Assembly: GCA_003427395.1 (NCBI GenBank) | Contig: BFEA01000004.1 | Span: 5,563,706-5,617,541, forward strand | Length of the DNA: 53,836 nt | Reading direction: 5' to 3' | Origin: Chara braunii | Lineage: Eukaryota > Plantae > Charophyceae | In this document: positions 7,855-53,836 of the stretch, piece by piece | Layout: each line of letters starts with the position of its first letter | Position numbering within the stretch: position 1 is the stretch's first letter | The notes under the pieces: model-generated | What the model was told of the DNA's origin: nothing | Database searches by the model: none | Seen by the model: only the letters and a program-made list of their open reading frames with translations | Position numbers and translations under genes: made by a program

Positions 7855-9587
7855 CCAGTGGCACAGATGCTCTGCTGCCCCTCGAGAAGTTGTTGAAAAA
7901 GAACAAGTCCTTGAAGTATAGAAGGGCATTGTTGCTGCTCGAGTAGCTGTTTGCTAATGTACATTCCACATTTTGCTACCTACCGCGTGTGGTCGTGAAC
8001 GTTTGTGTGCTGAATGTTTTCATTCTTGTTAACTTTGGGGTGACTTTGTCGCTTTCATCTCATAGGCAGTATCAGAAGCTGTTTTCCGCTTCCTTTATGA
8101 AGCCGCCGCTGGATGGGAGCTGCCGGTTGGGTTCTTGGAAACGTCTCTGTCACCATATGTGAGGCTGGCTTATTATATGCCACAACTCAAGACCTGTGCT
8201 TTTTTTCCTTCTCTTTTTTTTCCCCCCCCTTCCCCCCCCCTCCCCCCTTTCTTTTTTTTTTTATCCTTCAATGAAGCGCTTGGTTTTGCATCACAGTTTG
8301 CTTGTCATGTCTTTTTGTTTGTTTGTTTGCTTGTTTGTTCTTCTCAGGTATATAGCTATTCAACCTAGGAGCAGCATCAGCCCCACGCATGTCCATGGAG
8401 TAGCTCTTTTTTTTCCCTTTTTCTGAGGTAGAGTTATTTGGCCCAATTTCTTACGTGTAGTTGATGTCAGCCACTTTGTTGTTCTATGCGTGCTCTGTCT
8501 ACCGTCTTCCACGAATAAAATGTGGTGTCATTAGTTACGTACCTAGACTGCAAGTTGTTCGAAATACCGGAATGAAAAATACGGGAATAATGACCGCAGG
8601 ACGTATGTTCTATCAACATTTGTTCGCTCATCAACATTCGTCCGCTCAACGTCAGTGGCCGACTGATTTGCTCAACTCTCCGCGATCGCCGCAATGATCA
8701 TTCCTTCGGTAGCTGAAGATGTTTTATTGATGTCCCATATGCAGCCTTCCACAGAAGCACTAAGGCCATAATAATGACCATACATTCTGTTCACGGGGAC
8801 GACGGTAGTTCATTCGCTCGTCAACGTTCGTTCTTTCAACATCGATGGCCGACTGATTTGCGCAGTCTGTCCAATGATCATTCCTTCAGTAGCTGAAGGT
8901 GTTTTATGCATGTCCCATGTGTCCTTTGACCAAAGCCGTAATTTTCTTCTTCCTACACGGATGGTGAAATCGCCTTCTTTCTGCTCAGCCGGTGGAGATT
9001 CCAATGAGAGACTGTGGATTGAAAATGCCGTACCTAGTACCTGCTGTGGGAACGAGAGAGGTATGCAGAGCGAGCAATGAAGGATTTGCAACTGCACTGA
9101 TTCCTACCCGCTTTCTACTTCACGCATTTCACACTGCGCGGTCACGGTCTATGCGATCAATCAGTCGTGAAATATGGACCCCCCATATCTTAGAGGTGGC
9201 CCGATGAAGCTGCGAAGGGCTGCTCGCTCTGTCTTCATCTTTTAGGATGCTTGACGTCGATGGTGTCATTCTTCGATGAAATGCAGAATGAACTGAGAAA
9301 AGTCGATTCGAGTCGCGAAGAATTTCTGGCATAACGACAACAGGGTATGTTGTTATGTAGTGGTGAGTTTTGGGAGACCGTCATTCGTCCAGAGTAGTGA
9401 GAAGGTGTCATCAAGGTAGTGACTCTAGTGAGTGTATCACAGCAGTGTCCTTCAAACTTCTACTTATGTAGACCCTTCCTTTCTTTTCTTTCTTTTTTTG
9501 ACAATGCTCCAGTCTATTCATCAGGAGCAGCACGTGCCAGGAATCGGGCCCAGAGTGCTATATGAGAATTTTGAAGAACAATTTGAG

Positions 9588-9905
9588 GTACCGGGCTGGA
9601 CTACCAGCCGTGCCGCCCAGGTACCAAGGCTGGCATGGGACCCGCTCAGGACAACTGGCCGGGCAACCGGGCTGCATGGGGTCCCGGACGGGATGCAATT
9701 TCTGCTCTCCCCCCCCCCAAATAAACACCGGATTTGGGTACCTCACGGTGGGGGCAGAACAGCCCTACCATCAAAAAACCAAAAGAAAAACGTTTCGACG
9801 GGGGTTTGACCTGCTCGGGTCACCTGCGCGGGTGGGTCCCAGTTGCACTGGCCCAGCCGCACGGCCGAGCAGCCTGGCCAGCGCGGATCTGGTAGCCCGG
9901 GTATC
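9588..9905. mobile_element. Probable MITE with GC-rich inverted ends
   Basis: gtaccgggct...ctaccag at left versus ctggtagcccgggtat at right; internal tgggacccg versus cgggtgggtccca. Confidence 0.4.
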
Positions 9906-10380: not shown

Positions 10381-11080
10381 GACCTAGGTCGGAGATGTAT
10401 GGTCTGCATTTCGTATGTGGGCGTGTATATGCAGCGAAAAGGTGGGCTGGAGAAGAAGGGGTGCAGTATGTCATGGAAATCTTTGTGTACAGGATTTGTT
10501 ATTTCATGTGCCACATGCTGCCCAAGGAAAAAGCAGAGAAGGGTTCAATTTGGAATTTGGAATTTTGGTTACCTGGATTTGGAATTCTATGTATCTTCGA
10601 CAACCTGTGTATACACGGTGGTTAATATGATGTCAAAAAAAAAAGGGGAAAAAAAAACGAGTGTGGCAGCATGTGGCACTTATCCATGCTGTCTGAGTGC
10701 TGATGACAAGCAGAAATTTTCTTAAAATGTGGCACAAGCAGCCATTCTCTCCGCAGTGGTACGAGTGCCCAATTGTGACATTCTTATTCCTGTCTCCCCC
10801 TCTTTGGAGAACTGTTATAGGTAGTTGGTCCCCCATGGGAGACAAATAATACGCAAAGGAATCAAAGTTGAGGAGAAAGATGATATGAGTTTTACTATCA
10901 TGGCGTTATCACCTCCCCCCCGACATCTCCTTGATCGCCGAACACCATCAAGGATCTCAGCCCATCGGATTGAGAGAGAGAGTAATAGGTAGTTGCTCCC
11001 CGATGGGTTGGCTACGGATTTCGGCTGCGCTCTGCCCTACGTAGTTACTTGCTCTGTTCTTAAGCTCGTGTTTTTTTTCT

Positions 11081-11342: not shown

Positions 11343-12925
11343 TGATGTCTGTGAAAATAAATGTGTATCCATATCTCCAGTACAACACAGCTGTGCCCCC
11401 AAACAGCCACCTCGCAGGAGAAAACCATGCGCAAACACTCTACCATGCGCAAACACTCGAGGACAATTCTTACTTAGCTCTTCATTGGACAGAATGAATG
11501 TTGGAAGCGTGGAAGAAGTACAGGGAACAAGTACGGAGAAACGACAAGGATAATGACATACTGTTTCGTAGGGATAGCACTGGATGCCGAAGAACCCTAG
11601 ACACTGCAGAATCCCCACACTGATGTTCCGAGTCACGGGGCCTAGAGTCTAGACTGACTTTTCATGAGTGACGCCTCGCTCCACTTACACCCTTCTAGAG
11701 GTGTCAGAAAGCAGTCTCGAAGGGCGCACTCACGAAGCATCTAGTGTAGTTGACAGCCTGCAACGCTTTGGATTTCTAGTGTCCTCCTTCCTTTTTTTTA
11801 AGGCCCTTGTGCAAGGCCTCTATCCCAGTGGCCGATGATGCTTTTCTTTTTGACGAGTGTGCCAGGTGTCCCGTCGTCAGTATGGTTGGCGCTGTCGCGT
11901 AGTGCTCTAGGAACAAAACGAGTCCCCAACTGCTTACACTGATGCTTCTCCCTAGAGAGGAACGCTCCCCTACCGATGTTATTTTACATCCCACAGCTTC
12001 GGCTTAAGTCCCGTTCATCTTCGGCGCGAGAGCGCTTGATCAGTGAGCTATTACGCACTCTTGTCAGGATGGATGCTGCCTGCTGGACCGAGGCCGATAA
12101 TCAGCTGGGCAGAGGAAATCCCAATCAGCAAGGCAAGGGTGAGGCAATTGAAGAGGGCACTGCAAGGTGGGAAACGGAAGGGGCAGGTGAACAGCCAGCC
12201 AAATGACAAAGCAAGCAGCTGGGCAGCATCATGGGCAGCAAAAGAATAAGTCAAGAGGCGCTACACGGGAAGCAGCAGCGCCACACATTGGGTGGAGGGC
12301 ACAGGGGAGGAGGGAAGGCTGCGGAGCCTGTCACCCTCTTGGCAGTCCTGGAAGAAAATGACCTGGATCGCAGTGTTTGATCTTGAGAGAAATTCCCATC
12401 AAACCACCGGACGGATACCTCAGCGCTGACACGGCTGATCAACTTCTTGATCTGACAGATGGACTTAGGACGACTGGACTGCTGCCACACACCATTGCCG
12501 GGACAGAACACAGATGCACTAATAGACGATCGAACACCCATTACGTGGTCACAGCAACCCCACCCCTCGCCTCCCCCCTCTCCCCCAATCACCCCCTCTA
12601 CCCCAATCACCCCAGCCCCCCCTAGTACCCACTACCCCTAACTCAAAAAACGTGGTGATTCAGACAACTGGACTGCTTCCACACACCATTGCCAGGACAG
12701 AACACGGATGCACTAATAGAGGATCGAATGCCCATTACCTGGTTACAGCAACCCCGCACCCCCCCCTCCCCTCTCATCCCAGACCCCCGGTACCCCTATC
12801 TCACCCTCCACCTACCCCCACCCCTCCCAACAGATCCCTNNNNNNNNNNNNNNNNNNNNNNNNNNNNNNNNNNNNNNNNNNNNNNNNNNNNNNNNNNNNN
12901 NNNNNNNNNNNNNNNNGGATAAGGG

Positions 12926-12963: not shown

Positions 12964-15308
12964 CCCCCACCCTGACCCCGGACTAGCCGCCGCCTCCTCT
13001 CCCTGTCACCGCCCCTTCCCCCGGACTCCCTCCTGCCCATCCCTCTGCCCCTATCAGTGTTTACCCCAATCCTCACCCCTCCAGCATGAGCCTGGCAACC
13101 CCAACCCTCGCCAACAAGCCAAGCAGGACAGACAGATGGCAGCGGCACTACAAAAGATGTTTCTATGGTGGCCCAACATCGCCAACTCGGAAGAAGCGCT
13201 GGGTTCTGTGACCAGGGAGGGCAGCAGAGTGTTTGAAAGCTGCCCAAGTTGACAATTAAAGACGAGGGATAAACGTTAGGTGAAGTGAACGGTGGCCACG
13301 CTCCCCTTGGATTAGGGGCCAATTGGGAAATACACACCTTTTACCCTGCAAAGACTCCTTACAGCGGCTGCTTTCATCGACCTAACTATTCCCTTTTTTT
13401 TCTTTTCTTCTTTGTTTTAAAAACAATAGGTCCTTATGGCCCTGGCTCCATATCCATTTTGGGGAGCGTCAGTCTGGTTCCTATTCCACCGGCAAGTCAA
13501 AAATACAATTAAACGTATCAACATACTCACGCTTCCTTCCGTCTGGCCGAAGGATCCGACCTAACTATTCCCTACTGTCAACAAATACGAAAGGGTCCAT
13601 AAAACCCTGCCAGCACAAATCTGATGCACCTGCCCTCACCACGCCTCGGGGGTGGCAGACGAATATTGTCAACATATGTTAGTTATCCAAACATTTATCA
13701 GTCATTGTTATGTCCTCAGTGGGGGTCGCAGAGACCTGGAATTGAGCTCGGACTACTAAGCTGCAGGGGGATGTAAGATAGGAGGAGACAGTGGCCAATT
13801 GTCTAGTTGGGGGCTGGGCCAGTAGTAGGAAGCCGGAGCCTTAGAAGTAGTAGTAGGACGGGAGACCTATGCAGCCCCGAGGGAAGCATGGTGGTCCAGG
13901 CCCGGATCTGAAATGGCCATAGTCCCAAGAAACACTGTACTGAGATGATGTATCTAAGGGACGCTGGACTCGGGGTCTCCGGCACGTGTCGCTCCCCACC
14001 AATAGATGGAGCAGCCCGACAGGCAAAGCCTGAATTCCGGCAGTTCTATTGGGATAGAGGCCTTGCAGAAGGGCTTTTTGTGCAAAAAAAAAAAAAGGTA
14101 GCGGTTGTTGTAGAGGTTGGATACTAGACATATGATAGTCACCCTTGGTAAAAAAAAAAGAAAAAAAAAGAAAAAAAAAAGAAAAAAAACAAAAAAGGAT
14201 CTGCTCTTCATATCCCCCATGAACCCTTGACTCCTAGGGGACTTCTTTTGAGAGGATGGATTTGCTCTTCCAGAGGTACATTCCTGATATAGAAGTGCCC
14301 GTCTCCTCTTAAAGAGAATCAGCGGAGGGGAGTTCTCACGGCCGAAAAACTTCCGAGCAAACCTGCAACATCCTCCTTCAGGGCATATAGCAAAATTGGC
14401 AAGATCGTGTGATCGTGTGGCGCTGTACACGGATGGGATGCACAAATTGAGAGGAAAAAAAGTGGGTCTCATTTGATAGCTCCCCATCATTGGTTTTGGT
14501 GTGGAGTGCCCACGGTGGCATAGGGCCACCGAAAAACTCGCGGCGAGTAGCCATCGCCACACACACACTGCATTCAGCAACAGGAAGCGTTGTGTCGGGA
14601 CCACGTTCCCTGGAAACGTGTAGTGCGATGGTTCACTCACCCCAACTGGTGTGCACCTGGTCCAATTGAGAGATCAGGTGCACACCAGTTTGTGGCTGCA
14701 CACCAGTTTGTGGCAGTGGCATCGATGTGAGTTCAAGAAGACGATTCAGTCTGGACCGGCGGTCTGGACCATGGAAAACTCAGCGCGCTGGAGAGAGCCG
14801 GAAGGTGGAATACTCAGCGCGCTGGAGAGAGCCGGAAGGTGCCACCACAAGTCACCCATGACAGGCTGGGGAAACCCTTCTTGTGACGAGTACTCGCCTC
14901 GCCCATTCTTCTTTCCCTTGAACATGAGCAGGTATGTGGGGGGGGAGCGCGTGCAGCCATGCGACTCACCCCAGAACTGGGGGTGCTTGAGTAGCGCAGC
15001 AAGGCCCATAGACCATGTTGTTCTGGGATCGTAAAGTTGTGGCGGATCTAGATTAGGCACCTGGGCAAGTCAGCGAGGATTCCAGAAACCGTTGTGTTCC
15101 TCTCAAAATGAATCTGACTATATTACTTCGAAAACACACAACAGTATCAGATCAGTACATTCACAGCCTCGGATCCCTGTGTTATGACAGCACACGGGTT
15201 CGGACCCTCGTCCTTGGCCTCAAGAGCCAAGCATCGTAACCACTGCAGCCATGTTGTGGTGTTCAAAAGTGAAACCATACTGGTAATGATATCCACCCCA
15301 CCAACACA

Positions 15309-27779: not shown

Positions 27780-28130
27780 TGAATCCAGGAACGTCAGGGA
27801 AGGCCTTGACGAGGGTGGAAGTTACACTAGTGCTTTGACAAATGTATTTGGCCACTATGTCGAGAAAGGGATTGCAGTTGATTTTTCTTTTTGTTTTTGT
27901 TTTGAATTCCTTGTAGTGGCCTGCCAGCCAGGCAGGGCGTGTTTCACGGGTGACACGTAACTATCTAAGTGTTGTAACATCTTGTATCAACCCTCTATCA
28001 CAGCATAAGGGATGTTTTTTGTTTTGTTTTTTCATTGCTTCTCTGTTTTCTCTTGTACATGCCCTCAATAAGGACACAGTCACACGAGCACCTCATAAAA
28101 TTTATCTGGTGGTTATCAAAGCGTTTGGAA

Positions 28131-28163
<33 letters not shown>

Positions 28164-28229
28164 CGTCGACGAACTGTCCGGCTCGGTAAAACTCGGTGCG
28201 TAGTTAAAATCAGGGTCAGCAAAAATAGA

Positions 28230-29047
28230 CTCGGAGGTAGCGGTGGTTTATGCCCAACGGACCGCTCAGGTGGGTGCAAGACCTACAAAGACTCAATGCA
28301 ATTACGGTTCGAGATGCGGGTGGGTTGCCAAATGTCGACCAATTGTCGAAAACCTGTGCAGGGAGGGCTATTAATAGACCTCAATTCGGGCTGCGACCAA
28401 TTCCTCGTCTACCCCGTTGACCGGCCTATCACTATCATGCCCACACTGCAATGCCTTATTCATATGAATGTGGTCTCTCAGGGTTGGACCAATGCGGTTG
28501 CAATGATCCAACGCATTATGATTTGGGTGATGCAACCGATTAACCTTCAGATAACAGAGTCATACATTGACGACATCGCAGTGAAAGGATCAATACATCG
28601 ACGACCTCGTCGTGAAAGGATCGATGGCAAAAGATGGGATGGAGGTCATTCTTGGGGTCAGGAAGTTTGTCTGACCTGAAAAAAGGTAATCGATTTACTT
28701 CGAGAATATAACCTTACTGCGAGTGGTGTCAAGTATAAGCACTTCATGTGTCAAGCAACAATCTTGAGATTCGTTTGTAATGAGAATGAGAGACGGCCGT
28801 ATGAAAAGAAGACAAACAAAATTCTTAAAATGACTGATCACATTCAAACCATAACCGAGGTGAGGAGCTTCTTGAGCACATATAGGTTTTGGCGAATTTT
28901 TATTTTTTCCTTTGCAACAACTTCGAAAGTTGGTGAGGCAAAATCGAAATTGGGGGTGGGGTGAAAAGCAAGAGATTGCGGTAGCATAACTAAAAAAGAA
29001 TTTAAGGAGGCCAGGCTGGTGCTTGGGGTCCCTGACTATAGTACCAC
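28230..29047 (+). mobile_element. Ty3/Gypsy reverse transcriptase remnant
   Basis: WVQDLQRLNAITVRDAGGLPNVD (one frame), IDLNSGCDQF...MNVVSQGWTNAVA..QR.M...YIDDIAVK, TITEVRSFL....FWRIF, ending VLGVPDYS. Confidence 0.88.
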
Positions 29048-32000: not shown

Positions 32001-32707
32001 TAGCCAACTCCTTATTGGCGGTTGTTTGATTATTTTGTGGTGTTCGACCTGAGGCGGTCGGATTGTTTTTGATATTGTGTTATTGATGTATCAAATGAAG
32101 ATTTTGATTCTCCCCGTTATCATTTCGGATTAGATATATTCCTGTCGACTACGGTCGATTTTTTTTTATGTAATTATATGTAGATGTTTTAATTTTCTTT
32201 GGACGGTGTGTTTAAGGGACTAGGATGAATTGGGTTTTCACGCTTGGTTGAGACCGTCCTAGTCGACCGGCGTCCGATCCGGACCTAGGAGATCAGCGCC
32301 CTAGGAACGGACGATGTTCGGGTTCGCTTGGCGTTAACCATGCGTATCTATACTACAGCGAATGAGCAAATGCCCGCGGCTGACCTACCTCTACAATTGC
32401 ATCTAAAAACTTTCGTAATAGCTCGGTAGGGATATGCCCCTAAGGTTGGTGACACCCCCTTAGGGAGGGAAAGCTTAGGCCCCGCGGGAACCTATCCTGT
32501 CGTAGGGGACCGCGGGATATACAGTTGGCGCACTCGACTAGAACGGCGAAGGAGCGACGCGACCGCGACCGTCTTGGCGGTTCGTGGGGTTATTTTGCGT
32601 CGTTCCCAAGTTGTCTCTCATTTTCGTTTTGTTTAAACTCCTGCGTGACATGGCCGGGAGGGCTCCCGCTTCACAAAAAAAAAGGTAGGGAGCCGATACG
32701 CTCGACA
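29048..32707. mobile_element. ~3.66 kb nested insertion splitting the Gypsy pol (TGTC...GACA termini, solo-LTR-like)
   Basis: Pol reads VLGVPDYS before 29048 and resumes TMERPFIIETD after 32707. The insert begins TGTC and ends GACA. No clean target-site duplication. Confidence 0.6.
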
Positions 32708-32709
32708 CA

Positions 32710-33094
32710 CACAATGGAAAGACCCTTTATAATCGAAACAGATGCGGAGCCAACTGCATTAGGTGGTGTCTTGATCCAAGAGGACAGTGAGGGGAAGGAG
32801 AGTCCGCTACGATTTGAGAGTCAAATCTTAAATGTGAATGAAAAGAACTACTCTCAGTCCAGGAAAGAGGCGTTGGCGGTCTTGCACTGCCTTCGAGTGT
32901 TTCAACACTATCTATTTGGGTCCCAATTTGTCTTACGATTGGATCTTACAGTTCTGATCGCCTCGATCAAGAACTATGCTCCTACCAGTCTCATTATCGT
33001 CAGATGGTTGATGTATATTTGGATGTTCGACTTTTGGATCGTGCATTTACCCGACGATAAGAATAAGGCGGACAAAGTGAGTAGGGTTGATTGA
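32710..33094 (+). mobile_element. Ty3/Gypsy RNase H remnant
   Basis: RPFIIETDA...LGGVLIQ......PLRFES..LN..EKNYS...KEALAVLHCL..F.HYLFG..F.LR.D. Confidence 0.9.
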
Positions 33095-48179: not shown

Positions 48180-48819
48180 GGATGCAGAGATTTTGGCATT
48201 CAGTCAGAAATGGTCAGCGAAAATCAGAAATAGTTTTCAGCCATACTATATTTCAAAACACGGTTATAAGCAGCCTGGTTATGTTTGACCGGACTTGAAA
48301 AGATATGACGGCGCACTCTTTTAGACAGTTAACGAGCCAATCGAAAGTAATAACCAATGCTAGGAAAGCATCCATTAGTCGATCACAGGAATCGAACGCG
48401 CGATCTCTCTCTCATATGCAATGGGAGTTTGCTTTAGAGGACACGAAAAAAGGGGTTCACATCGTTTACTTTCGACTCCTGATTGAGGGGGTCCTCACAT
48501 CATCAGCTCTATCTTAAATGTGTCTGACCGCATTTACGGCCGAACGTGGATGCATCTGACCACAATTACGTCCAGAAACAAGTGAAAAAGTCCCACTGTG
48601 AGTATGTGCTAAGGCAGTTTGAGAACACCATGGTCGTGGCGGCTGGCCACTATGGAAAATGCCGTTCTGTATAGATTTTCTGTTGAAGGAAAGACGATTT
48701 GCTGTCGACAATGTAAGAAAACGGTAGGGGGTCTTCTGAGAAAGGCCTTGGCGGTATTAATTACAGTATGCATGACAGCGCTTGCCTGTTTTCTTGTGCC
48801 TTCTTTGGTGATGTCTGAT

Positions 48820-49005
48820 TATAGTCGGGATACATATGCCACCTATGTCCGATGAAACAGCACGTCACAACCTCGCTTTCTTTATGGGTATAGTCGGGAT
48901 ACAGATGCCAAATAGGTTCGATGATCGATGAACAAAATGTCACAGCCTCGCTTTCTTTATGGGTATTGTCGGGATACAGATGCCAATGAGGTCCGATGAA
49001 ACAGC
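48820..49005 (+). repeat. Tandem repeat, ~3 x 70-78 bp
   Basis: gtcgggataca.atgcca...cgatga...gtcaca.cctcgctttctttatgggta is repeated. Confidence 0.8.
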
Positions 49006-49137
49006 ATTCTCATAAATCAGGGTGCTATTTGGAGTCGCGGAGGTTCAGGTTTTCTCCCATCAATCAAGACTGAAGGCATATGCCTGGCTGGTCATCGGAA
49101 ACCTAGGGATATCGTTTCGCGGCAGTCCACGTTGAGC

Positions 49138-49138
49138 G

Positions 49139-49174
<36 letters not shown>

Positions 49175-49205
49175 CGATGATGAGGATGATGATGCGACCA
49201 TATAG

Positions 49206-49237
<32 letters not shown>

Positions 49238-49612
49238 GGTGCTGGGGGAGGTGGCGATGTCCGTGACGGTGATGGTAATGAGGATAATGATGATGGTGAT
49301 GATCGTTGTGATGGTTGGACAATGAGGTGCCCCAACGTCGGCTTTGCTCGTCATGTAAATTAGTGGGCTTGTGAGTCCAGCATTTGCTTGAGGACGAATG
49401 GCAGACTTGAGTACTGCAGAGCTAAGGAGATTGTAAGGGACAGCTGGGCGATTAATTGATCGATTGATCGATTGATCGATTGATTGATTGGCTCATCTGA
49501 CAGCCGGGCAATTAATTGATCGATTGATTGATTGGTTCATCTGACAGCTGGGCGGTTAATTGATCGATTGATTGATTGGCTTATCTGACAGCTGGGCGAT
49601 TAATTGATCGAT

Positions 49613-49644
<32 letters not shown>

Positions 49645-49770
49645 CGGTTCATCAGTCGATCGATCGATTGTTTTGTTGGTTGATCGATTGATTGATTTGT
49701 TGGTTGATTGGTTGACTGACTGATTGATTTATTGATTGTTTGATTGATGGACTTATTGATTGATTCGTTT
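49138..49770 (+). repeat. (GAT)n tract followed by a ~45-60 bp minisatellite built on (GATT/GATC)n
   Basis: (gat)n at 49138-49310; gacagc(t/c)gggc..ttaattgatcgatt... occurs four times at 49439-49630. Confidence 0.9.
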
Positions 49771-50266
49771 TACTGATTGGAGTACCTTACCCATTGCCCC
49801 TGGTTATTAGACGACCATTTTGGTTTTCAAAAATGTAATCATTGTTGAGGGGAAAACAGTTGGTGGTGTGCGGCGGGGAGATGAAGCTCCCGAATTCAGG
49901 GTTTCTGTGGGAAGTTCAGAAAGGGAAAACTGGAAAAGAGAAAAAACACGTCGAAGGAGAGGCAATCAGACTGTCTAAGTCTGCCGCCGCTTGATCGACC
50001 AATAGCCAATCAATCGCCGAGCAGCCAATCGAGGCATGAGCTGTTTATGGTTAGTTAATAAGTGAAAGACAAAGATCAAGCCGGTGCAAATAATAATCTC
50101 TGTTGATTAATCAATTGCCAACAACGCATATCACTCATTGAAATAAAATTATCGAAGTAATAATCTGTATATATAAATGTCTGTTTGACGATATATGAAA
50201 AACGAATTGATTTATTTTCTTGTTTTCCTTGTCTTTTTCGCTTTTGCGCTCTGATATCTCTATGAC

Positions 50267-51045
50267 GGTACACGGACACGTTCATCCAATATTGCTCTTC
50301 GTATGGTGGTCCGTGGACCGCGTGCAGGGGAGTGGACAACCGATACGGGACCTGACACTCTTTCTGTGTCGGACATTCTTCAACATCTTCGTTTTATTGT
50401 TACTAATACATATTTATATACAGCGGATGGCCTTGTGCGTCATCAAGACGTCGGTATCCCTATGGGGACAAATGCTGGTCCTGAGATTGCAATCTTACAC
50501 TTTATTGGGATGAGGCGCAGTACGTGGACAACCTGCAACGTGTGGATCCTTCCGCTGCTCGACAATATGCTTTCACTTATCGTTTCATTGATGATGTCCT
50601 CACTTTCGGTTGCCTCCCGCCATCGCCAGCCTGTTATGGTCTGGAATGGAAGGAGACAACGGATCCTGATGGTTCTTGCACTTTCTTAGGTGCGAAGCTG
50701 CAGACACGCACAGATGGATCCCTCCGATTGAGTGTGTATGATAAGACTGTTGCATGGGGTTTCCCTGTTATACGATACCCTAGTGCAACGTCAAACATTC
50801 CATCTCATCAGCCTGCAGGTGTGTTCACTGGCCAGCTTACGCGGTTTGAGCAGATTTGTGACAATTGGCTCGAGGATGGACTTGTTATATTCGTGCCCGC
50901 CGTTTGCTTTCCCGTGGCCATGTTCCATCAACACTGGCTCGAGGATGGACTTGGTATATTCGTGCTCGCCAGCGTCGGCAGCCTACACATGTGACGAGAC
51001 TTACACAATGGTTTCGTCGCATGCTTAGTTGGTCCATGCATCATC
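50267..51045 (+). pseudogene. Penelope-type reverse transcriptase, C-terminal part, frameshifted
   Basis: Reads LRFIVTNTYL...RHQDVGIPMGTNAGPEIA, then a 1-nt frameshift near 50490, then NLTLYWDEAQYVD...YRFIDDVL...TFLG...SVYDK...IRYPSATSNIP...GVFTGQLTRF..IC. The thumb continues in another frame as RRLLSRGH. G.PMG...P..ANL, R(Y/F)IDD, FL, VY.K and YP..S..P are characteristic of PLE RTs. Confidence 0.85.
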
Positions 51046-51306
51046 CTCTTCTACCCTCTCCTCCCCTTGCTACCCCTTCTCCCCCTCCCCCTCCCCCTTC
51101 CTCTGTTCCATCTGCTCGTCCTTCTCCTCCCTCTCCCCCTTCCCCTCCTCCTCCTCCTCCTCCTCCTTCCCCTCGCCCTCCCCCTCCCCCTCCCCCTCCC
51201 TCTCCCTCTCCCTTCCTCCCCCTCTCCCTCTTCTTCTTCACCTCCCTCTCCTCCTTCTTCTTTTTCTTCCTCTTCTTCTTCTTCCTCCTCTTCTTCCTCT
51301 TCTTCT

Positions 51307-51371
<65 letters not shown>

Positions 51372-51435
51372 TTCTTTGTCTTATCGACACCGTCGACTGA
51401 GATCAGCCCTTCCCTTATCTTCGTTGTCTATATGA

Positions 51436-52515
51436 GGACGGCGGCAGGCTCGTTCATTCTCCCCACCTTCTAGTCCCCCTTCCTCTCGGCGTCGTATTGA
51501 TCCTAAACTGCCTGGTTCGTTGTCTGACCGACAACCTGCTTTGGTACGTCGACGGCGTTCGTCAATTAAACGCCGACCGCGCCAAATCAGACCGGGCCTT
51601 CCAGTGGTGACCGATTCGGATTTGCGAGCAGATCTACCAAACATTTGTGGCCTGACAGCCACGAGTGTTTGTCTGCAAGCTTATCAGCGTCAAGGTTATA
51701 CTGTATCTCAATTTGTTACGATTGCTTATCAGCTTGACGCTGTTGAAAATGAGTTGTTGTATGACCATAATGGTCTAGCTCCTGAGGATAGTAATTATAC
51801 TACCTCAGGAGGCTTTACTATAAATGTCTTACAGTTAGCATTTCACGGTCGCCACCTTCTCATGCATTATGGGACGCCAGGCGAGGACCTTAATGCCCGT
51901 CCTCATATTTCTGCATGCATTTTGCACAAACCCGGGCACTATATGGCACTCGTTCGTGCAGCTGCTCAGTGGGAACTGTGGGATGGTGGGACGGTGATTC
52001 AGGTTATTGTCAACATAAATGAATTCTTGCGAGGTTTGTTGAATCATACACTGTTCTGGATTGTTGAGCGACTCTCGTGCGACATTTGTCGGGATAGAGA
52101 CGTGGTGCGTCTTGGTTGTGGAATGCATTATCTGTGTCAGCACCATTATCAATCCATTGCGACTGCCGCCGTATGTGCGGAAGGGTGTCTAACATTTCCT
52201 CATTGTGCACATCCCTATCACCCAGATGTACGTTGTCCTTTCTGTTCCCAAAGACGCTATCAGAACTGCATGATGCCGCACTGTGACGAACGTCCTGCTG
52301 TTTTTTTGACATGTGGGCAACATGTCCTATGTCGGGATTGTTTCGATGGGATGGTTCGTGCTAGCCGTCCGGCTGAATGCTGTACTAACGCAACTCTCCT
52401 TGGGTATCCCTGTGAACATCCCCGTCATCCTCACCGTAGTTGTCCTATCTGCCGAGGGGGTGACAGAAGAAGTGTAGAAGAAACAGATAAAGAAAGAAAC
52501 CGAGTAAAAAGATAA
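51436..52515 (+). CDS. Josephin-like cysteine protease / deubiquitinase domain plus two RING-like Zn fingers (PLE cargo, probably the C-terminus of the RT polyprotein)
   Basis: Open frame of ~360 codons with no proper ATG start. NICG, TIAYQLD..E, SN.TTSGGFTINVLQLAF and CILHKPGHYMALVRAAAQWELWD align by eye with ataxin-3 SLCAQH, SIAHQLD..E, GNMDDSGFFSIQVISNAL and ICNYKEHWFTVRKLGKQWFNLN. Followed by two CxxC..CGxHxLCxx(C/H)..CPxC units. Confidence 0.72.
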   Translation, partial: GRRQARSFSPPSSPPSSRRRIDPKLPGSLSDRQPALVRRRRSSIKRRPRQIRPGLPVVTDSDLRADLPNICGLTATSVCLQAYQRQGYTVSQFVTIAYQLDAVENELLYDHNGLAPEDSNYTTSGGFTINVLQLAFHGRHLLMHYGTPGEDLNARPHISACILHKPGHYMALVRAAAQWELWDGGTVIQVIVNINEFLRGLLNHTLFWIVERLSCDICRDRDVVRLGCGMHYLCQHHYQSIATAAVCAEGCLTFPHCAHPYHPDVRCPFCSQRRYQNCMMPHCDERPAVFLTCGQHVLCRDCFDGMVRASRPAECCTNATLLGYPCEHPRHPHRSCPICRGGDRRSVEETDKERNRVKR

Positions 52516-53437
52516 AAAATAAATAAATAAAAAAAGAAACCAAGGAAGGAAAAACACAAAAAAAGAAACCTGANAAAAAAGAAAAAAGAAAAAAGAAAAA
52601 TATGTTCTGTGGGATGGTAATTGGATTATCTGTGGGATGTGTCACTTGCTTCGGCTTTCTTCTTCTGTGAAGTTTGGTTTCCTCCGCCTTTTCTTTACCT
52701 CTTTGGCTTTTGGCTGCGTGCAAGTGGGTCTTTATGACACACGGGGATGGGGGCAGCCAGCGCTCAACCTGTCATCCACGTGGCTGGCCTAGTACGTAAG
52801 AGGTGACGAACAGGTGGGGCTTTCCTTCCTTGCTTCTTTTTCTTTTTCTTGTTCTGTCTTTTTCCGCCTATGCGCTCCGATTTCCACTGTGACAATATAT
52901 TGCAGCAGGTAGCGGTGCTTCATGTGGGACCAGTCATCCGTTTTTTTTTTTATTGTCTTGGCATCCTGGTTGGTTGTTTCCCGTTGTTTGGCCTTTTGAG
53001 CGTTGGGCGGTGCTTGATCGTCATCCGGGATGGGTTATTTTTGGTACTTTCTTTGATTTCTTTGCAGACAAGAATGTTTTGACATCCTGGTTGGTCTTGT
53101 CCCGTCGTTTGGCCTGTGGGCAAGGGCGGTGCTTGCATGTGGGACTTGTCATCTGGGATCTGGTTTGTTGCCCCCTTTCCTGTTTTATTTGGCTGTTCCC
53201 TTCCTCTCTTCTTTGCCTCTTTGCCTTTTGGCTGTGTGCAAGTGGGTGGATATGACAGACGGGGGTGGGGGCAGCCGCCGCTCAACCTACATCCACGTGG
53301 GCGGAGGTTCTGAACAGGGGGAGTTGTAAGGAAGAAGATTAAAAAGGAATTAAGGCTTTTTGGTTTTCCTTGTTTTCTTTCTGTTTTTTCGCTTTGGCGC
53401 TCTGATATCATGTGACGATATATATATACAATATATA

Positions 53438-53675
53438 CACAGCCCCTCGTTTGTTGTCCTCTTCTCTCTCTCTGCCTACGGTTTACCGGGCAGTTCTGTT
53501 TGTGACGATATATCGTTTGTTGTCCTGTTCTCCCTCTCTGCCTACGGTTTACCGGGCAGTTCTGTTTGTGACGATATATATATATATATATAGTTTGTCA
53601 CAGCCCCTCGTTTGTTGTCCTCTTCTCTCTCTCTGCCTACGGTTTTACCGGGCAGTTCTGTTTGTGACGATATAT
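53438..53675 (+). repeat. Three tandem ~60-75 bp units separated by (TA)n, each ending in a hairpin plus TGTGAC
   Basis: Near-identical units ...tcgtttgttgtcct.ttctc.ctctctgcctacggtttaccgggcagttctgtttgtgacgatata ending at 53506, 53572 and 53668. Confidence 0.9.
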
Positions 53676-53836
53676 ACTACGACTTCGCTAGCTTCCTGCT
53701 ACGTTTTTTTCCGGTCAGGTCGAGCGGCAGTGGTCAGGGCCATTACTAGGCGGCCATGCTGTGCCTCTAGTGCCAGCGGCGTGTCTGGAGTGTATTTTTT
53801 GGCTGTGACAGACCTTTCTTTGTTTCGTGGATGTTT

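Follow-up and report, generated by a model that had tools for sequence, protein, structure and literature searches.

A remnant of a reverse transcriptase (RT) lies near the end of a 53,836-nt stretch of the Chara braunii genome (contig BFEA01000004.1, positions 5,563,706 to 5,617,541 of the forward strand; the whole stretch is called the window below). It is followed on the same strand by an open frame that encodes a Josephin-like protease domain and two Cys/His modules. The question raised by this locus is whether these parts came from one transposable element and, if so, from what kind. No class of eukaryotic retrotransposons is less well understood than the Penelope-like elements (PLEs), and their accessory domains hint which host pathways they must overcome. 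Our analysis indicates that window positions 50215 to ~53676 are very probably a dead, 5'-truncated insertion of a Chlamys-type PLE that belongs, or is sister, to the family Chlamys-1_cBra, and that its ancestor encoded a single polyprotein; this includes the roles that we infer below for the Josephin and RING-like parts.

Layout of the element

All features of the element are on the + strand, and its coding remnant occupies window positions 50271-52515. The initial annotation had described a PLE-type RT, a Pro/Ser-rich tract and then a long open frame, and all of these are present and correctly placed. The features of the coding part are the following.

50271-51050, + strand: C-terminal half of a Chlamys-type PLE RT, in three frames (tblastn against the relative P0014)
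50866-50970, + strand: 69-bp tandem duplication and rearrangement in the RT thumb, with the second frame change (repeat family D11, 94% identity)
51040-51435, + strand: Pro/Ser-rich low-complexity linker that contains (CTCCCC)n and (CTT)n microsatellites and stops at an in-frame TGA
51436-52515, + strand: open frame with a basic patch, the Josephin domain, RING-like modules 1 and 2 and a basic tail, closed by TAA at 52513-52515
51544-51591, + strand: Arg/Lys-rich patch resembling a nuclear localisation signal, placed by alignment 15-30 residues upstream of the catalytic Cys
51622-52065, + strand: predicted Josephin (MJD-family) cysteine protease domain (Pfam, AlphaFold2, Foldseek, conserved triad)
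52069-52257, + strand: RING-like module 1, C-x2-C-x9-C-x2-H-x2-C-x2-H ... C-x2-C, with an inserted C..C-x-H-x2-H site
52258-52464, + strand: RING-like module 2, C-x4-C-x9-C-x2-H-x2-C-x2-C ... C-P-x-C-R, with an equivalent inserted CCHH site

The window copy keeps the part from mid-RT onward. Over 50271-52515 it is colinear in tblastn with P0014, an intact metagenome polyprotein of 1282 residues encoded by a single open reading frame (ORF), and also with P0010. Residues 1-780 of P0014 had no tblastn match anywhere in the window, and the window copy is therefore 5'-truncated. The remaining residues of P0014 were matched in four segments.

50327-50497, + strand, frame 2: P0014 residues 781-837, 61% identity
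50458-50865, + strand, frame 1: P0014 residues 825-961, 56% identity
50901-51050, + strand, frame 3: P0014 residues 975-1024, 54% identity
51640-51987, + strand, frame 1: P0014 residues 1124-1248, 34% identity

The RT remnant begins shortly before motif B and includes FIDD and the thumb. In the translation of 50224-52515, motif B (GIPMGTNAGPE) is read in frame 2, the sequence YWDEAQYVDNL...YRFIDDVL...FLGAKL...SVYDK...VIRYPSATSNIPSHQPAGVFTGQLTRF in frame 1, and the end of the thumb (LLSRGHVPSTL...WFRRMLSWSMHHPL) in frame 3. The first frame change is near 50490 and the second falls in the thumb rearrangement, which was judged against the thumb sequences of P0010 and P0014. Together with a third break in the linker microsatellite and one stop codon, these changes make up the reading-frame damage of the window copy; translations and tblastn against P0014 thus reproduced the RT frameshifts, the microsatellite slip and the TGA at 51433 as the initial annotation had reported them.

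The broken pieces were searched one at a time; Pfam gave no match for the RT pieces alone, so the RT was identified through its relatives. It carries motif B (GxxMG..P), motif C (xxDD) and the thumb pattern YPS..SN.P.HQ..G...GQ..R of PLE-type RTs. We regard the family as probably Naiad/Chlamys-type because the RT homologues P0014 and P0010, to whose RTs the window pieces are 54-61% identical, carry GIY-YIG, CxC and DK motifs. No second copy of the coding part was found elsewhere in the 53,836-nt window.

Continuity of the RT and the downstream frame

To find relatives we searched 1.84 billion representative proteins with the 331-residue ORF by phmmer, which returned 12. A word-indexed protein search with a 359-residue ORF returned one relative only, and a search with a single protein in the JGI metagenomes returned none. 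RT stands upstream of Josephin in one uninterrupted frame in P0010 (787 residues), in P0008 and its cluster mate P0014, and in P0011 from ENA; P0015, P0017 (Logan) and P0009 (C. braunii GBG62897) are further single ORFs of this kind. The fusion of RT and Josephin that had been proposed for the window is thus seen directly in intact relatives.

The layout of P0014 is GIY-YIG (VIYAIV...YIGQT; 15.8 bits), CxC (CHC...DGH), DK motif, RT, Thr/Pro-rich linker and Josephin. P0015 likewise has an N-terminal GIY-YIG (15.8-17 Pfam bits in the two proteins, below threshold), CxC, DK, RT and Josephin. Across P0014, P0015, P0016, P0019, P0021 and P0024 the GIY-YIG region scored 15.8-22 bits against a Pfam cutoff of 22.6, and the window copy lacks this region. 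The CxC motif occurs in the relatives as CHC, CPC or CAC, then DGH.

Five of the 12 relatives are C. braunii proteins (GBG83788, P0003; GBG63275, P0004; GBG64487, P0006; GBG77352, P0007; and GBG62897). The C. braunii hypothetical proteins listed include fragments of the PLE RT or of the Josephin region, and in GBG64487 a PLE fragment is fused to an amino-acid transporter domain. Such fragments in C. braunii gene models are probably transposon contamination or exonisation.

Further copies at the nucleotide level repeat the order of the parts. On contig BFEA01000451.1 (L007), RT (8066-9615), Josephin (10466-10717), RING (11497-11835) and a core of the 3' untranslated region (UTR; 12560-12640) follow one another on one strand. 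The same contig has a second, 5'-truncated copy at 13042-13716, whose identity with window 51695-52369 is 86% at the DNA level and 79% at the protein level, and a third copy that is inverted. Contig BFEA01000037.1 (L008) carries Josephin, two RING modules and the UTR. The DNA identity of 86%, together with the nearly identical 66-bp repeats described below, places the window in C. braunii or a very close relative. The C. braunii loci examined comprise at least two subfamilies with ~42% protein identity. These C. braunii copies and the intact one-ORF relatives indicate that the adjacency of RT and Josephin is therefore not coincidental.

There is no ATG ahead of the Josephin domain in 51436-52515, as had been noted when the frame was first described as lacking a credible start codon of its own. 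A Pro-, Thr- or Ser-rich linker is also found at the equivalent place in P0014, P0011, L005 and L001. The in-frame TGA at 51433-51435 is private to the window copy, as L001, a relative with 71% identity, has a sense codon at the aligned position; conversely, L001 has a TAG of its own that aligns with an open codon of the window. Stops that are private to single copies fit the decay of a frame that would once have been continuous.

Selenocysteine read-through of TGA is known for Naiad elements. We rejected it for the TGA codons of the window: TGA 50992 is in a frame that the RT has already left, and TGA 51433 corresponds to the sense codon in L001.

Comparison of the copies with their relatives shows the predicted order of the ancestral polyprotein to have been GIY-YIG endonuclease, CxC motif, RT, low-complexity linker with basic patch, Josephin and two tandem RING-like zinc modules.

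The Josephin domain and the basic patch

The initial annotation had assigned the protease to the Josephin family, and Pfam, AlphaFold2 and Foldseek agree on a predicted Josephin fold. PF02099 matched the window ORF at 26.8 bits, narrowly clearing the curated cutoff of 26, and matched relatives at up to 40.3 bits (38.6 bits for P0014); the same Pfam scan of the frame also gave a weak RING match. An AlphaFold2 model from a 17-row alignment had a pLDDT of 80-95 over the domain. The top seven PDB matches of this model in Foldseek were all Josephin domains of ataxin-3 or JOSD2 (E 2.5e-6 to 9.6e-5, probability 1.0, target-normalised TM scores of 0.45-0.61); matches included 2dos, 3o65, 6pgv and 1yzb.

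The candidate catalytic triad consists of Cys43 (NICGL; codon 51646-51648), His140 (GHYMAL; 51937-51939) and Asp155 (LWDGG; 51982-51984) in the numbering of the 331-residue ORF. It is conserved across the aligned relatives, with variation between D and N at the third position. The spacing of 15 residues between His and Asp equals the His119/Asn134 spacing of ataxin-3. The domain would most likely act as an isopeptidase on ubiquitin.

The basic patch ahead of the domain may be a nuclear localisation signal; the position of the basic cluster is kept in P0001, P0014, P0010 and P0011.

The RING-like modules

The Josephin domain is followed by two consecutive Cys/His modules. An alignment of ten modules from five loci has invariant columns C4, C9, C19, H22, C25, C/H28, H54, H57, C62 and C65 and nearly invariant columns C42 and C52. 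The first six and the last two columns give eight cross-brace ligands in RING order, with His as the fourth ligand and a first spacing of x2 to x4, and the modules follow the RING ligand pattern C-x2-C-x(9-39)-C-x(1-3)-H-x(2-3)-C/H-x2-C/H-x(4-48)-C-x2-C. Four further ligands, in a long loop, could hold a third zinc. The modules are 33-44% identical to each other and to those of other copies and therefore appear to have arisen by tandem duplication. In the relative L005 there is only one module, and the two loop cysteines are missing from it.

The best Pfam match of module 2 was zf-RING_5 (E=6e-4, 20.1 bits against a cutoff of 27.9), and zf-RING_2, zf-P11 and others were also matched by the modules below threshold. 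In a profile search of the PDB, module 2 found the RING of the arenavirus Z protein best (E=1.2e-3), and a PDB sequence search with the ORF found the cIAP RING at E=5 only. A 69-residue AlphaFold2 model of module 2 (pLDDT 71.7) gave Foldseek matches that were nearly all RING domains, with E values of at least 1.4. All database matches of the modules are RING families and each is below threshold. Because these matches are weak, we call the modules RING-like and treat ubiquitin ligase (E3) activity as putative. The proposal of a double RING therefore held in part: there are two paralogous modules with the RING ligand pattern, and the name RING itself, which draws on that pattern and on sub-threshold matches only, was softened.

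The Pro after ligand 7 is nearly invariant, and in module 2 an Arg directly follows the last Cys. Pro and Arg at these places are typical of active RING E3s.

Selection on the Josephin and RING-like parts

We compared copies by the ratio of nonsynonymous to synonymous substitution rates (dN/dS, Nei-Gojobori). Between the window copy and the second copy in L007 it was 0.28 over the whole comparison, with 0.37 in the Josephin part and 0.20 in the RING part, and it was 0.26 between the RING pairs of L004 and L008. All of these values are inflated because neutral decay followed insertion. That they are low in spite of this inflation shows purifying selection on the predicted Josephin and RING parts while the family was active.

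The 3' UTR and terminal repeats

The noncoding parts of the element, which include a remnant of a pseudo-long terminal repeat (pseudo-LTR), are the following.

50215-50262, + strand: pseudo-LTR remnant that repeats the 3'-terminal motif of the element itself (TTTTTCGC..GCGCTCTGATATC..TGACG), 87% identical to 53365-53409
52516-52600, + strand: A-rich stretch right after the stop codon
52600-53425, + strand: 3' UTR in two diverged units of ~520 bp each, with a conserved core and a terminal motif per unit
53438-53676, + strand: terminal repeats of the element family: 66-bp units in tandem, ~3.5 of them, each with TGTGACGATATA at its end

The two UTR cores are at window 52716-52803 and 53234-53300 and the two terminal motifs at 52860-52895 and 53385-53425. 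In the alignment of downstream regions the ~90-nt core has the pattern GCGTGCAAGTGGG..TATGxCAxACGGGGATGGGGGCAGC..GCGCTCAAC, also written GCGTGCAAGTGGG..ACGGGGATGGGGGCAGC..GCGCTCAAC, and the terminal motif has the pattern TTTTTCGC..GCGCTCTGAT..TGTGACAATATAT. Core and terminal motif occur twice in the window and are also present in L004, L007 and L008, where the cores are at L004 943-1029, L007 12560-12640, 14038-14160 and 14897-15020, and L008 11245-11330. The core keeps 81-94% identity across L004, L007 and L008, even between the subfamilies with ~42% protein identity, and it is the sole stretch that nucleotide BLAST aligns between them. The RT may recognise it as a cis element. The core had no Rfam match, and RNAalifold found a weak structure with one compensatory pair (covariation term -0.57), for which we claim no RNA structure.

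The pseudo-LTR remnant lies directly upstream of the truncated body, which begins mid-RT. The same arrangement recurs: the terminal motif or the 66-bp units, at window 50215-50262, L007 12924-13041, L007 7424-7899 and L008 9900-10017, directly precede 5'-truncated bodies. These upstream copies of the 3' end form a partial-tandem pseudo-LTR arrangement. Pseudo-LTRs formed through partial tandem insertion are typical of PLEs. The 66-bp units of the window are 95-100% identical to units that flank element copies in L007 and L008. They resemble the extreme 3' end repeated several times, as might result from rounds of abortive insertion or of insertion with template switching.

At the other end of the window, positions 1-165 belong to a further copy of the family, namely to the end of its 3' UTR, with 92% identity to L008 11345-11517 and 82% to L004 1068-1149; the terminus is likewise TGTGACAATAT.

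A hammerhead ribozyme was not found: Rfam gave no match at the gathering score in the whole window and no ribozyme match at E≤5 in 48500-53836, and the matches at E≤5 were chance microRNA and snoRNA matches in microsatellites only. A canonical hammerhead is likewise missing from most published Chlamys elements (PMC8557442).

Related elements and proposed function

An RT-based search recovered Chlamys-type PLE polyproteins of metagenomic origin, with N-terminal GIY-YIG, in which a different protease follows the RT. P0020 (L009 100-3768) has a Ulp1/C48 protease in this position (Pfam 26.5 bits against a cutoff of 20.7; yeast Ulp1 at E=3e-5), and P0019 (L010 211-3861) has an OTU-like domain with a DGDCFFHA motif and a weak score of 15.7 bits. 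In P0014 (L006 1912-5760), P0015 and P0017 the post-RT position is taken by Josephin. The presence of Ulp1 and an OTU-like domain in the same slot points to the removal of ubiquitin-like modifiers as the selected function.

In P0005 (L005 249-1181), P0019 and P0020 a C2H2-like motif (CxxC...H...H/C) immediately precedes the protease; the window copy has no such motif.

We propose that in the intact element the RT would recognise the conserved 3' UTR for target-primed reverse transcription and that the basic patch would take the protein to the nucleus. There the Josephin domain would most likely deubiquitinate the element's own protein or ribonucleoprotein, or host factors, and would thereby shield the retrotransposition machinery from ubiquitin-dependent degradation or restriction. 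For the RING pair two roles can be envisaged. It might ubiquitinate a host factor as an E3 ligase pair in which module 2 is active, or it might be a zinc-dependent interaction platform whose self-modification is reversed by the adjacent Josephin domain.

It could be speculated more generally that in this branch of Chlamys-type PLEs the post-RT position is an exchangeable cassette for ubiquitin-like deconjugases (mostly Josephin, with Ulp1/C48 in P0020 and an OTU-like domain in P0019), extended in Chara by a duplicated RING to an eraser and writer pair. We hold this idea tentatively and would not count on it. If it is true, conjugation of ubiquitin or SUMO by the host would be a general barrier to PLE retrotransposition that has been countered repeatedly and independently.

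Alternative explanations

Several points weigh against our assignment of the locus to a Chlamys-type PLE with Josephin and RING-like functions. The window copy has no GIY-YIG, CxC or N-terminal RT, which makes function of its own impossible, and because these parts are missing its family membership rests on relatives. It was matched to Chlamys-1_cBra by the published description, and it may represent a sister subfamily. An intact ORF with RT, Josephin and both RINGs was not recovered in any database searched; of the single frame expected from the first description of the locus, GIY-YIG, RT, linker and Josephin are found together in P0014, and no ORF recovered has both RINGs as well. The RING assignment is sub-threshold in every model, with AlphaFold2 confidence of 45-72 for this part. 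Finally, the position of the Josephin oxyanion-hole Gln aligns uncleanly, and an Asn is found two residues before the Cys instead.

That a PLE RT fragment came to lie by coincidence beside an unrelated Josephin-RING host gene, or beside another transposon such as a long interspersed nuclear element (LINE) of the Dualen type, is scarcely credible. The frame changes, the stop and the microsatellite between RT and ORF would leave room for it, as continuity is unreadable from the window copy alone; however, RT, linker and Josephin share one open frame in P0014, P0015, P0010, P0011, P0017 and P0009, the C. braunii loci repeat the order, with the common 3' UTR behind the RING ORF in every copy, and neither an APE or RLE endonuclease nor a LINE-type RT was seen. 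We also consider it very improbable that the Josephin-RING part was translated as a separate ORF2, unfused to the RT. The metagenomic relative P0001, which has an ATG 40 residues upstream of Josephin, and the stops between RT and ORF in the window would suit such an arrangement, but the window ORF has no ATG, in L005 the frame remains open on its upstream side, across the Pro-rich linker and as far as the end of the contig, each stop occurs in one copy only, the intact relatives are single ORFs, and the published family has a single ORF of ~1800 residues (PMC8557442). Our preferred reading is still a single ancestral polyprotein.

Within such a polyprotein the Josephin domain might act mainly in cis and free the RT from the C-terminal module, like viral papain-like proteases. 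Its place after a long, flexible and disordered linker would allow this, and the deubiquitinase fold is found in many viral polyprotein proteases. We think it unlikely, as no shared Gly-Gly-type or other cleavage motif was seen in the linkers of the aligned relatives, and as Josephin, Ulp1 and OTU-like domains in one slot are more easily explained by selection for deconjugation of ubiquitin or ubiquitin-like modifiers. A more substantial possibility, though not the one that we expect, is that the Cys/His modules are not ubiquitin ligases and instead bind nucleic acid or protein through zinc, for example in ribonucleoprotein assembly or target-site binding, which would leave Josephin without a writer partner. 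The sub-threshold scores of all RING matches would accord with this, as would the arenavirus Z protein as best PDB profile match; the RING of that protein acts through protein binding. The extra CCHH site is absent from canonical RINGs, the related elements P0014, P0010, P0011 and P0017 function without any RING, and Craig et al. left the C/H motif unnamed (PMC8557442). On the other hand, the eight cross-brace ligands are invariant and spaced in the RING manner, the fourth of them is His, which matches RING and not PHD domains, the modules adjoin a deubiquitinase, and the Pro after ligand 7 and the Arg after the last Cys of module 2 are the residues discussed above in connection with E3 activity.

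Surroundings of the element

Pfam scans of 18 other long ORFs of the window found only RT and RNase H of LTR retrotransposons and no host gene. Fragments of an LTR retrotransposon, unrelated to the PLE, lie on the + strand at 28035-28679 and 32525-33094 (RVT_1 25.9 bits, below cutoff; RT_RNaseH 84.7 bits). Just upstream of the element are long (GATT)n arrays, built of higher-order units of 44 bp, together with a (TGA)n array (49450-49765 and 49139-49236); the only chance matches to Rfam microRNAs came from them.

Comparison with known systems

In 2021 Craig, Yushenova, Rodriguez and Arkhipova established the Naiad/Chlamys clade for PLEs whose GIY-YIG is N-terminal (PMC8557442). They described Chlamys-1_cBra of C. 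braunii as a single ORF of ~1800 residues with a C-terminal Josephin-like motif and then a conserved, unnamed C/H motif, and drew a parallel with Dualen LINEs, which have a Josephin-like domain (PMC8557442). The combination of Josephin and a C/H motif in a PLE, with which the initial annotation was not familiar, had therefore already been described, and the novelty of the RT-Josephin-C/H architecture in the C. braunii genome is low. The window element resembles Chlamys-1_cBra in its PLE RT, its C-terminal Josephin (a weak match) with a C/H extension, its 5' truncation, pseudo-LTRs and tandem repeats, and the lack of a canonical hammerhead. As a dead relic of a published family, the window copy adds little alone.

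Dualen/RandI LINEs of green algae also carry a Josephin-like cysteine protease within the retrotransposon polyprotein, which is thought to interfere with the degradation of proteins (Kojima and Fujiwara 2005, cited in PMC8557442; also 10.64898/2026.06.17.732966). These LINEs have APE and RLE endonucleases and a LINE-type RT, whereas the window element has a PLE-type RT and relatives with N-terminal GIY-YIG. Josephin is N-terminal in Dualen/RandI of Haematococcus; in the window element it is C-terminal and followed by the RING-like modules. No LINE proteins were among the relatives that phmmer found with the window Josephin. Identity with Dualen/RandI was rejected, as the RT homologues are GIY-YIG PLEs and APE and RLE were not found in the relatives or around the window copy.

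With ataxin-3 and JOSD1/2 the window domain shares the fold by Foldseek, the Pfam family and the Cys-His-Asp/Asn triad. It differs from them in that identity is only 16-19%, the domain is part of a retroelement polyprotein, the oxyanion-hole Gln is not evident, and there is no ubiquitin-interacting motif or polyglutamine tail. RING E3 domains (zf-RING_5 / zf-RING_2 / zf-P11 clan) have in common with the window modules the C3H(C/H)C... C2 ligand order and spacing, the CPxC motif and, for module 2, the Arg. In contrast to these domains, the window modules have a C, C, H, H set in the loop between ligands 6 and 7, form a tandem pair and score below threshold.

Three additions to the published picture can be named. 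Where the C/H motif of Chlamys-1_cBra was left unnamed in the 2021 paper, the window has a pair of paralogous RING-like modules with one additional CCHH site apiece, and the reading of the motif as a duplicated RING-like pair is new. The strongly conserved core of the 3' UTR is a modest addition to the family description. Ulp1 or OTU-like proteases at the equivalent position in related elements are a new finding: the words Ulp1, OTU and SUMO are absent from the 2021 paper (PMC8557442), and a limited literature search found no report of Ulp1 or OTU-like domains in PLEs. Next to the Josephin-like domains already described in Chlamys-1_cBra and Dualen, the RING-like pair beside a deubiquitinase and the apparently exchanged ubiquitin/SUMO proteases suggest a testable link between ubiquitin-like modification and the control of PLE retrotransposition.

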